DNA of 64,000 nt, taken from assembly GCA_010909165.1 (NCBI GenBank), contig VJWM01000016.1, forward strand, positions 372,001-436,000, written 5' to 3'. A program made the position numbers and the translations under genes. Positions within the stretch are counted from its first letter, which is position 1. Each line of letters begins with the position of its first letter. This DNA comes from Anthoceros angustus. Lineage: Eukaryota > Plantae > Anthocerotophyta. The notes under the pieces were generated by a model. The model did not search any database and was not told the DNA's origin. It saw nothing but the letters and a program-made list of their open reading frames with translations. Shown piece after piece: positions 17,003-20,652 of this stretch.

Positions 17003-20000
17003 ATGGGGAGCAGATTGTTGACGTCGGGAGGGGCATTGCCTGCAGCTGCAGCGCGGAGGGATGAGTGTCACCGTGTCCCTTCTCGCGCAGGGTTTCACCT
17101 CTGCCTTGCATCGGGCGGGGCCGGATTCCAGCTCGGGGCCGGGGCCGGGGTCGGGGTCGGGCGGGGCCGAAATCTGTTCCCCCACCGCCCAGAGTGGTCC
17201 TCAGGAATGTTGCCAGGTTTTCAGGATGGCGAGGAGCTTGCTGGGTCAGGCCCGTGGATGTTGTGTCCAGCCCCAATGCGTTCTCGTACGCGGCGGAGTC
17301 AGGGCAGGGGGGAGACGGAATCGCAGACGGGTTTGAAGTACCGGAAGCAGAGTTTGAACGAGAGGGAGGGGCTGCAGATGTAGGCCCTCGGGAGCCGGAG
17401 GTGGCAAGCCAAAGTCCTGCGCAGAAATACTGGGTTGCTCCTCCTAGAGGGTACGTGCCACCTCCTGAGCAGCCTGCTCCCGAGCAGAAGTACTGGGTTG
17501 CCCCTCCCAGGGGATATGTGCCGCCTCGTGAGCAGCCTCCTCCTGAGCAGCCGCGTCCGGAGCAGAAGTTCTGGGTTGCTCCTCCTAGGGGTTATGTGCC
17601 GCCTCAAGAGCAGTCTCCTCCTCAGCAGGCTCCTCCTCAGCAGGCGCGTCAAGAGCAGAAGTTCTGGGTTGCTCCTAGAGGGTACGTGCCACCTCCTGAG
17701 CAGCCTGCTCCCGAGCAGAAGTACTGGGTTGCCCCTCCCAGGGGATATGTGCCGCCTCGTGAGCAGCCTCCTCCTGAGCAGCCGCGTCCGGAGCAGAAGT
17801 TCTGGGTTGCTCCTCCTAGGGGTTATGTGCCGCCTCAAGAGCAGTCTCCTCCTCAGCAGGCTCCTCCTCAGCAGGCGCGTCAAGAGCAGAAGTTCTGGGT
17901 TGCTCCTCCTAGAGGGTATGTGCCGCCTCAAGAGCAGTCTTCCCCTCAGCAGGCCCCTCCTGAGCAGGCGCGTCCCGAGCAGAAGTTCTGGGTCGCTCCT
18001 CCCAAAGGATATGTGCCGCCTCAAGAGCAGTCTCCTCCTCAGCAGGCCCGTCCGGAGCAGAAGTTCTGGGTTGCTCCTCCCAGGGGATATGTGCCGCCTC
18101 AAGAGCAGTCTCCTCCTCAGCAGGCTCCTCCTGAGCAGGCGCGTCCGGAGCAGAAGTTCTGGGTTGCTCCTCCCAGGGGATATGTGCCGCCTCAAGAGCA
18201 GGTTCCTCCGCAGCAGGCTCCTCCGGAGCAGGCGCGTCAAGAGCAGAAGTTCTGGGTTGCTCCTCCCAGGGGTTATGTGCCGCCTGCTGAGCAGTCTCCT
18301 CCGCAGCAGGCTCCTCCTGAGCAGGCGCGTCAAGAGCAAAAGTTCTGGGTTGCTCCTCCCAGAGGATATGTGCCGCCTGCGGAGCAGTCTCCTCCTCAGC
18401 AGGCTCCTCCGGAGCAGGCGCGTCCCGAGCAGAAGTTCTGGGTTGCTCCTCCCAGAGGGTATGTGCCGCCTGCTGAGCGGCCTCCTCCTCAGCAGGCTGC
18501 CCCTGAGCAGAAGTTCTGGGTTGCTCCTCCCAGAGGATATGTGCCGCCTGCTGAGCAGTCTCCGCCTGAGCAGCCTCCTCCTGAGCAGCCGCGTCCTGAG
18601 CAGAAGTTCTGGGTTGCTCCTCCCAGGGGATATGTGCCGCCTGCGGAGCAGTCTCCTCCTGAGCAGCCTCCGCCTGAGCAGCCGCGTCCCGAGCAGAAGT
18701 TCTGGGTTGCTCCTCCCAGGGGATATGTGCCGCCTGCGGAGCAGTCTCCTCCTCAGCAGCCTCCGCCTGAGCAGCCGCGTCCCGAGCAGAAGTTCTGGGT
18801 TGCTCCTCCCAGAGGATATGTGCCGCCTGCTGAGCAACCTCCGCCTGAGCAGCCGCGTCCCGAGCAAAAGTTTTGGGTTGCTCCTCCCAGAGGGTATGTG
18901 CCGCCTGCTCAACAGCCTCCTCCTGAGCAGCCTCCTCCTGAGCAGTCGCGTCCTGAGCAGAAGTTTTGGGTTGCTCCTCCCAGAGGATATGTGCCGCCTG
19001 CTCAGCAGCCTCCTCCTGAGCAGCCTCCTCCTGAGCAGCCGCGTACAGAGCAGAAGTTCTGGGTTGCCCCTCCCAGAGGATATGTGCCGCCACAGGAGCA
19101 GCCTCCACAGGAGCAGCCTCCGCCGGAGCAGGCGCGTCCCGAGCAGAAGTTCTGGGTTGCTCCTCCCAGAGGATATGTGCCGCCTGCTGAGCAGCCTGCT
19201 CCGCAGCAGGAGGAGCCGCGTCCTGAGCAGAAGTATTGGGTAGCTCCTCCTAGGGGATATGTGCCGCCTGCGGAGCAGCCTCCGCCCGAGCAGAAATTCT
19301 GGGTTGCTCCTCCCAGAGGATATGTGCCGCCTGCAGAGCAGCCTCCTGCGGGGCAGCCGCGTCCCGAGCAAAAGTTTTGGGTAGCTCCTCCGACTGGATA
19401 TGTGCCTTCTCAAGAGCAGCCTCCTGCTGAGCAGCCTGCTCCTGAGCAGAAGTTCTGGGTCGCTCCTCCGAGAGGATATGTGCCGCCTGCAGAGCAGCCT
19501 CCTGCTGAGCAGCCGCGTCCCGAGCAGAACTTCTGGGTTGCTCCTCCGACTGGATATGTGCCGCCTGCAGAGCAGCCTCCTCCTGAGCAGGCGCCTCCCG
19601 AGCAGAAGTTCTGGGTTGCTCCTCCGACTGGATATGTGCCGCCTCCAGAGCAGCCTCCTCCAGAGCAACCTCCCGCGCAGAAGTACTGGATTGCCCCTCC
19701 CGTCGGATTTGTGCCGCTTTCGCCCGAGGAAGCGGCTCTGCAGTGGGGTCAGCCTGCGCGGCAGGAGCGGAGGCGACAGGCCTTTGTGAGGGATGTAACA
19801 GTTTCGATGGAGGATCTGCGGCCTGGCGCAGTGTTCAATGGAAGGGTGGTGGCAGTGCAGTCCTACGGGGCTTTTGTGGACATCGGGGCTTTCACCGACG
19901 GCTTAGTGCACATCTCGCAGCTGAAGAACGATTATGTGGCCTCAGTTCACGATGTGGTGGTTCCGGAGCAGGAAGTGAGAGTGAAGGTGATCTCGGTGGA

Positions 20001-20652
20001 TGCCAATGCGGGCAAGATCTCTCTCAGTATGAAGGACGTGGTTGAGGAAGATGCAGAGGCGGTTGCCGATGTCCAGCAGCCGCGTCAGTGGCCAGCTGCA
20101 GAAGGGACAGCTGTGGTGGGTGCAACGGACGCTGGTGGGAAGCCCGTGTGGACGGGGAAGATCGCAGGAAGAGGACGGCAAGGTGCGGACCAGGCATCCA
20201 GGTCTTCCGGCCTGAAGAAGGGACAGGAAGTATCGGGTGTGGTGAAGAACATTATCGCCAACGGCGCCTTTGTCACGTTGGGCAACGGTGTTGACGGGTT
20301 TCTCAGGGCTAGTGAGACGGACAATCCTTCCAACTTGCCCCTGAATGCTCTTTTCCAGGTCGGGGAGTCGCTGGATGTCCGAGTGCTGAGAGTGGAGAAG
20401 GGAAGGGTGGCCCTGACCATGAAGAGGGCGTTGGACTTGAAGAAGGTTAACGAGTCCATCAACAAAAACGAGATCGTCACTGCTGCTAACCCCTTCGAGC
20501 TGGCGTTCCGTCAGGCCAAAATCCTCCCCTCTGCTGGGGCTGACGACGGGGCTGCTGAAGAAGTGGCTGCTGAAGAAGAGGCTGGTGACGAGGAGGCTGC
20601 TGAAGAAGCGGTCGCTGTCCAGGCGGAGGTGCAGGAAGCGGCCAGCATCTAG
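17003..20652 (+). CDS. Putative plastid PSRP-7/PETs-like double-S1 RNA-binding protein lacking EF-Ts domains, with a 28-copy Trp/Tyr/Pro/Gln repeat region; N-terminus needs a 1-nt correction
   Basis: The frame is open from 17065 to 20652. The C-terminus has two S1 domains (PGAVFNGRV...[20 protein letters not shown]...KISLSMK; KKGQEVSGVVKNI...GAFVTL...DGFL...VRVLRVEKGRVALTMK) followed by AANPFELAFR, as in the S1 part of the plastid EF-Ts polyprotein, then an acidic tail and a stop. There is no in-frame ATG before the repeats. ATG 17003 opens MGSRLLTSGGALPAAAARR...RNLFPHRP, which would join this frame if one C were added in the C-run at about 17178-17190. Confidence 0.85.
17422..19719 (+). repeat. 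Coding tandem array of 28 units, each QK(F/Y)WVAPPRGYVPP plus 1-3 five-residue spacer modules
   Basis: Counted in the translation. Unit lengths are mostly 21, 26 or 31 aa. Spacer modules are EQSPP, QQAPP, EQPPP and EQPRP/EQARP. The last unit is diverged (QKYWIAPPVGFVP). Confidence 0.97.

Follow-up and report, generated by a model that had tools for sequence, protein, structure and literature searches.

How does a plastid-type S1 protein come to carry 28 copies of one short aromatic motif, and does the chain built from these copies serve the protein in any way? The question is raised by a gene on the forward strand of the 64-kb stretch of DNA analyzed here (hereafter, the window; positions are counted from its first letter), in which a single uninterrupted frame of 1195 codons (17065-20652) joins a long array rich in Pro, Gln and Glu to a pair of S1 domains. 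An earlier note on this DNA had described the gene as a fusion between a PSRP-7-like protein and a motif array, and had proposed its product as a candidate scaffold of a chloroplast condensate, possibly one associated with the pyrenoid. We found that the S1 pair is, judged by similarity to known proteins, the PETs/PSRP-7 module of streptophytes, and that the array is a lineage-specific insertion into this S1-S1 protein. The locus is a real, transcribed nuclear gene, probably of an Anthoceros-type hornwort. The function of the array can be discussed with much less confidence, and several explanations that require no function, or a different one, are weighed below.

The motif array

As the earlier note had read it, the frame holds the array, the S1 pair and an acidic tail before it ends at a TAG stop codon (20650-20652); the coordinates of these parts are collected in Table 1. 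The motif is 13 residues long and is present in 28 copies. A strict degenerate DNA pattern of the motif gave 26 matches, all of them within 17431-19643, compared to none in 100 shuffles. The remaining 2 of the 28 copies are variants: one is without a single Pro codon, and the other is the degenerate final copy KYWIAPPVGFVPL. The copy number and the variable Pro/Gln/Glu linkers that had been noticed earlier are thus confirmed. The spacers are composed of xxPEQ pentapeptides and have lengths of 8, 13 or 18 residues (lengths of 12 and 15 occur once each); the repeat units measure 21, 26 or 31 residues, and all changes in length are in whole codons. The array as a whole comprises 765 residues, including 28 Trp, 24 Phe, 32 Tyr, 46 Arg, 28 Lys, 76 Glu, 118 Gln and 238 Pro, with an isoelectric point (pI) of 6.0, compared to 5.5 for the whole protein. 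Tandem Repeats Finder detected higher-order periods of 231, 264, 357 and 450 nucleotides (nt) at 84-95% identity, which is indicative of block duplication.

The structure of the last six motifs together with the S1 part was modeled by AlphaFold2, using a 16-sequence alignment. The predicted local distance difference test score (pLDDT) of the array was 44-60, with no secondary structure; the chain is thus predicted to be disordered, as expected from its proline-rich composition. A Pfam match to the immunoglobulin (Ig)-like domain of CFAP65 (PF24507) was dismissed as compositional; it contained no passing stretch.

The S1 pair and its family

Downstream of the array, Pfam recognizes two S1 stretches (E=1e-29), and both oligonucleotide/oligosaccharide-binding (OB) folds have pLDDT values above 90 in the AlphaFold2 model. 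The ANPFxLAFR motif and the acidic tail that the earlier note had listed with them are also present (Table 1). In the 16-sequence alignment, the N and both F of the NPFELAFR helix are invariant, the R is nearly so, and the S1 cores are conserved. The top matches of the S1 region are PETs proteins of Sphagnum, Ceratodon, Physcomitrium, Riccia, Mesotaenium and Closterium, with 43-50% identity. In a maximum-likelihood tree, the window protein is nested within the PETs clade of streptophytes and belongs to its land-plant polytomy, which is the position expected for a hornwort. In addition, the chain named PSRP-7 in the solved Chlamydomonas chloroplast ribosome matches the S1 part with E=2e-17, which is a matter of sequence similarity only. 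These results agree with the earlier assignment of the S1 pair to the PSRP-7/PETs module.

The nearest relative found, P0131, comes from the Logan assembly SRR33208241 (locus L001) and is encoded by a single exon; it has 530 residues and a start resembling a transit peptide. The window protein and P0131 pair as sisters with support of 100/99, and are 51% identical over 268 columns of the tree alignment (56% over the S1 part, according to BLASTP). Like the window gene, P0131 has no EF-Ts, and it terminates just past NPFELAFRQA.IL, as the window protein does; in contrast to the window protein, it has three S1 domains and no motif array. It should be noted that, in P0131 (L001, 1720-3312), the first S1 domain is duplicated almost exactly, and a 34-letter stretch occurs twice. 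The two genes can be described as one gene family that was enlarged by two different routes.

A tblastn search with five full PETs proteins across the whole 64-kb window detected no EF-Ts, the S1 part being the sole match; an EF-Ts located downstream, or hidden behind an intron, was dismissed on these grounds. Given this negative result and the aminopeptidase-P/prolidase-type gene that follows downstream, EF-Ts is truly absent from the S1 gene, in line with the earlier note. Shorter S1-S1 proteins that lack EF-Ts occur in mosses, lycophytes, ferns and angiosperms (some of these are PETs isoforms or truncated models); therefore, loss of EF-Ts is not unusual by itself. The Robison preprint supplement, in the part available as text, contains no EF-Ts or S1 entry.

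Origin of the array and constraint on the motif

In the protein, the array follows the targeting sequence and precedes the first S1 domain; at this place, the homologues have a short, variable region of acidic character. The motif is absent from P0131 and from all 250 homologues that were fetched. A word-based search with the array returned no match, and HMMER, run exhaustively against 1.84 billion representative proteins, returned ten weak matches, all of them compositional (PQE or other repeats). The ESM Atlas gave generic repeat proteins only (scores below 0.75), the degenerate DNA pattern of the motif had no match in the metagenomes of the Joint Genome Institute (JGI), and the motif strings were not found in the literature searched. 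The gain of a motif array by a PSRP-7-type S1 protein, as proposed in the earlier note, is thus best described as a lineage-specific addition, and the architecture of the protein is undescribed within the literature and the representative proteins that could be searched, although the family itself is known.

One of the HMMER matches, the 279-residue protein P0130, deserves a separate comment. It is an unrelated protein with repeated FKFVPYRGFVPV-like motifs and acidic spacers, and its N-terminal part resembles an arthropod cuticle chitin-binding domain. The core V.P.RG[FY]VP of P0130 is similar to the hornwort motif, and this similarity is probably due to convergence.

We calculated the proportions of synonymous (pS) and nonsynonymous (pN) differences using Nei-Gojobori counts over all pairs of units within the window array. 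For the 13-codon motif, pS is 0.28 and pN is 0.04 (ratio 0.15), compared to a pN/pS of 0.42-0.46 for the spacers; in terms of protein sequence, the spacers change three times as fast as the motif. The motif is clearly under stronger constraint than the spacers, consistent with the purifying selection that had been suggested for it. The pS value of 0.28 between units also indicates that the units are more than a set of recent copies.

Traces of the array were found in other organisms as well. In organism D, a related species, RNA contigs align to the array with an identity of 90-99%; synonymous changes account for 10 of the 19 differences listed. Organisms B, C and E have exact 31-mers of the array in their DNA and RNA runs. 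Motif-coding 31-mers or contigs were thus detected under four coded species labels other than that of the window organism. The pattern of related runs is, like the position of the S1 module in the tree, compatible with a hornwort as the source.

Transcription and gene model

Run X1 derives from the same organism as the window and behaves as RNA; one of its contigs contains the spliced joint 16884>17014. A second X1 contig spans 17162-17581, which takes in the N-terminal region together with the first three motifs, and a third one extends from 19615, in the last two motifs, via both S1 domains and the stop codon to beyond 21300. The X1 contigs over both array ends thus place the array and the S1 gene together on RNA at each end. 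No joint that skips the array was found among the X1 RNA contigs, and shorter contigs cover the array.

It should be noted that the contig starting at 19615 crosses the stop codon of the S1 gene and enters the first exons of the neighboring aminopeptidase-P/prolidase-type gene. This multi-exon gene (AMP_N match; ~21256-24600, forward strand) begins ~600 nt past the stop codon of the S1 gene, and the crossing contig indicates that the transcripts of the two genes overlap or read through.

The 5' part of the gene model is less simple. Depth in X1 is zero inside the intron upstream of the array, and the exon junction 16884/17014 recurs as a loose end in run X16 of organism D. The X1 RNA contig reaches ~102 nt farther 5' of the leader exon, to ~16598. 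The earlier note had placed the start codon at ATG 17003, followed by a continuous transit peptide; this start was rejected, because 17003 lies inside the intron (the RNA contig joins 16884 to 17014). The ATG at 17061 is likely to be the sole plausible start. Its frame is -1 relative to the main open reading frame (ORF) and terminates at 17336. The switch between the frames must fall between 17061 and ~17190, within G/C-rich hexamer repeats. Within this interval, 17143-17161 is the one part for which no exact RNA contig is listed. The S1-gene contigs are broken here, in the hexamer-repeat region 17130-17168, and the frame problem may sit in the same region. The first 75 residues of the main frame include no acidic residues, a composition similar to that of transit peptides; plastid targeting of the protein would be expected from homology and from this N-terminal composition.

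Several solutions of the frame problem were considered and dismissed. In DNA run X2, one C is missing from the C-run at 17179, and this deletion would join both frames; however, X2 is not to be trusted, because its single-base gaps fall within the conserved S1 domains as well, and its differences were dismissed as sequencing noise. A second, frame-repairing intron is contradicted by the RNA contigs, which are colinear over 17014-17142 and 17162-17581; the phase-compatible GT..AG pairs would yield introns of just 37-43 nt. The alternative acceptors 17091 and 17193 were rejected, since the frames of exon 1 are closed for both. Codon-position guanine-cytosine (GC) content was also tried for locating the frame switch, and was uninformative.

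Some additional properties of this region should be mentioned. The G-rich hexamer repeat (GGGGCC/GGGGTC) at 17130-17168 is common to another transcribed locus, and one RNA contig aligns to 17135-17168 only, with unrelated sequence on either side. A (GGCAGA)n repeat is located at 16597-16636, at the apparent beginning of the 5' leader. The leader (16665-16884) contains two upstream ATGs, which open ORFs of 75 and 20 codons ahead of the likely start.

Table 1. Parts of the S1-array gene, with positions in the window and the evidence for each part
Feature	Position	Strand	Evidence
5' leader exon	16700..16884	+	X1 RNA contig record 1; three-frame translation
Intron, 129 nt, GT..AG (GTGAGT...GAGCAG)	16885..17013	+	Joint 16884>17014 in X1
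Likeliest start codon (MSVTVSLLAQGFTSALHR...)	17061..17063	+	One base off the main ORF; inference
Pre-array N-terminal region, main frame	17065..17424	+	~75 residues without an acidic residue, then an acidic stretch
Array of 28 K[F/Y]WVAPPRGYVPP motifs and Pro/Gln/Glu spacers	17425..19719	+	Pattern counts; pN/pS; low pLDDT
S1 domain 1	19819..20034	+	Pfam PF00575, residues 919-990; pLDDT >90
S1 domain 2	20212..20406	+	Pfam S1/S1_RRP5, residues 1050-1114; pLDDT >90
ANPFELAFR motif, which closes the PETs S1-S1 module and is conserved	20485..20511	+	Residues 1141-1149; alignment A1
Acidic Ala/Glu tail and TAG stop codon	20533..20652	+	Tail residues 1157-1195

Proposed function and alternative explanations

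The anatomy of the protein is compatible with a multivalent tether or condensate of plastid RNA-protein particles; we propose this function tentatively, as the likeliest of the mechanisms considered, although it falls somewhat short of an even chance. The short disordered stretch that other plants have between the transit peptide and the first S1 domain has grown here to a disordered chain of ~765 residues, in which 28 aromatic, basic, proline-bracketed motifs are separated by stiff Pro/Gln/Glu pentapeptide spacers. According to the model, plastid RNA or the small ribosomal subunit would be bound by the S1 pair, whereas the array would offer many weak, identical contacts, either among its own motifs (Trp/Tyr/Phe with Arg/Lys) or to a partner that is itself multimeric. 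As a result, plastid RNA-protein particles would be gathered into a dense phase or anchored at one place in the chloroplast. That the 28-motif chain is a working multivalent scaffold, acting through the S1 domains and the aromatic/arginine stickers either in the assembly of a chloroplast RNA-protein condensate or in the docking of plastid mRNA and ribosomes on a multimeric partner, e.g., Rubisco at the pyrenoid surface, is a putative extension that we consider doubtful and, on balance, unlikely.

Several points weigh against a tethering function. A single full-length transcript of the array and the S1 domains has to be presumed from short-read contigs, which cannot bridge the array. The main frame is shut by TGA at 17062-17064, and an in-frame ATG is absent 5' of the array; with the frame as assembled, the N-terminus and the transit peptide are thus putative. 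The S1-S1 part of land-plant PETs is not known to have a separate function, and Arabidopsis EMB2726 is reportedly not processed (PMC8343077). The 31-mers show that organisms B, C and E carry and transcribe motif-coding DNA, and give no copy count. Finally, unequal exchange homogenizes repeats, and therefore the apparent conservation of the motif is inflated.

Unequal exchange is also the core of the main rival explanation, a tolerated repeat expansion. Under this scenario, a minisatellite expanded in an unconstrained, disordered N-terminal stretch; the array has no binding role, and the protein works as an ordinary plastid S1-S1 protein. The short, acidic and variable state of the equivalent region in homologues is in agreement with such an expansion, as are the block duplications, and a partner for the array is not known. 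A neutral minisatellite is, however, difficult to reconcile with the low pN/pS of the motif at the synonymous difference observed between units, with the faster change of the spacers, with the persistence of motif-coding 31-mers under four other species labels and in their RNA, and with a frame that stays open across all 28 units and their many changes in length. We consider it somewhat unlikely, and it is the alternative to be taken most seriously. A broken or mis-assembled gene (a pseudogene, or a gene that starts elsewhere and whose product is not plastid-targeted) is a less likely explanation that we regard as improbable. The TGA codon in front of the main frame, the lack of an ATG in that frame before the array, the ATG 17061 one base off and the two upstream ORFs in the leader could be explained in this way, whereas 1195 open codons, intact conserved S1 domains, and transcription and splicing of the locus argue against it; the missing C of X2, from a run that is itself unreliable, would join the two frames.

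The remaining alternative concerns the pyrenoid: the motifs would bind Rubisco or another pyrenoid component, and the protein would tie plastid mRNA or ribosomes to the pyrenoid or help to form its matrix. The sticker-spacer layout is similar to that of known linkers, and the motif has the letters K..W..P.RG in the same order as KWSPRGGS, the sticker by which the diatom PYCO1 binds the Rubisco small subunit, although this is a resemblance only; the PYCO1 sticker is helical, whereas the window motif is proline-bracketed and predicted to be unstructured. The published screens for hornwort linkers used a pI >8, or a period of 40-80 residues with a repeat content of at least 0.8, as criteria. The window protein shares disordered tandem repeats and a short sticker with the linker class; with its pI of 5.5 and its period of 21-31 residues, it would have been filtered out by these screens and probably was never looked at. 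Identity with the published hornwort candidates Sc2ySwM_228.417.1, PPP1 and PPP2 is unlikely; these were selected for the lack of a predicted fold, for SMC similarity, or for a pI >8 with irregular repeats. On the other side, the pI of 5.5-6.0 and the short period are unlike those of EPYC1, CsLinker and PYCO1. According to a 2026 review, condensation of Rubisco in Anthoceros agrestis is apparently regulated by the Rubisco small subunit isoform RbcS-STAR, and not by a separate linker, and RbcS-STAR triggers the formation of a matrix in Arabidopsis as well as in a hornwort that lacks pyrenoids. The lone linker-like candidate among the proteins enriched by co-immunoprecipitation with Rubisco proved to be no linker. 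With the hornwort role apparently taken by RbcS-STAR, and with a pI and a period outside the linker ranges, the pyrenoid link drawn in the earlier note is not supported, and we find it quite unlikely.

If the scaffold reading that we consider unlikely is nevertheless correct, land plants would have an equivalent of the algal translation zone, made from a fragment of a translation-factor gene. For land plants, little is understood about chloroplast RNA granules and localized translation, and the window protein, with its exceptionally regular sticker-spacer array, is a concrete candidate for an organizer of plastid RNA-protein particles. The array is expected to yield a highly repeated tryptic peptide, FWVAPPR, which can be searched for in existing proteomics data. 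Should the array prove to be inert, the locus would remain a clear example of EF-Ts loss in the PETs family, combined with a coding minisatellite that has been kept in frame across species.

Other genes in the window

Two other loci in the window should be mentioned. An ORF at 24775-25320 (forward strand), just 3' of the prolidase-type gene, contains four tandem units of ~25 residues (PKRPSGSQEARHSLNKDKKDADD...). Farther downstream, an uninterrupted ORF of 925 residues at 28292-31069 (forward strand) has the full MutL architecture (HATPase_c_3, DNA_mis_repair and MutL_C) and represents an intron-less mismatch-repair gene within an otherwise intron-containing plant genome.

Comparison with known systems

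The closest known system is PETs/PSRP-7, represented by PETs of Chlamydomonas and EMB2726 (At4g29060) of Arabidopsis. It shares with the window protein the order of the two S1 domains, the NPFELAFR helix with an acidic stretch behind it, and a disordered stretch ahead of the first S1 domain. In contrast to PETs, EF-Ts is missing both from the window gene and from the 43 kb downstream of it, and the N-terminal stretch is filled by the 765-residue motif array. It should be noted that PSRP-7 of Chlamydomonas is defined by its membership in the ribosome, whereas the window protein is linked to PSRP-7 by sequence similarity.

The pyrenoid linkers resemble the window protein in having a disordered chain with many short stickers that bear Trp and Arg/Lys, and in their location in the plastid, which is presumed for the window protein. 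There is no sequence homology between them. The window protein has 28 stickers, compared to 4-6 in the pyrenoid linkers, and its period of 21-31 residues is shorter than the spacer intervals of ~50 found in the linkers. Its sticker is proline-bracketed and predicted not to be helical, and, as a further difference from the linkers, its repeat chain is attached to RNA-binding domains that are folded.

The third comparison is with FUS-like RNA-binding proteins, which have low-complexity domains of aromatic and arginine stickers and spacers. As in these proteins, Tyr, Phe and Trp residues, together with Arg, are regularly spaced in a disordered chain that is joined to RNA-binding domains. The differences are in the spacers, which consist of Pro, Gln and Glu in the window protein, as opposed to Gly and Ser; in the compartment, which is presumably the plastid; and in the motif of the window protein, which is far more regular.

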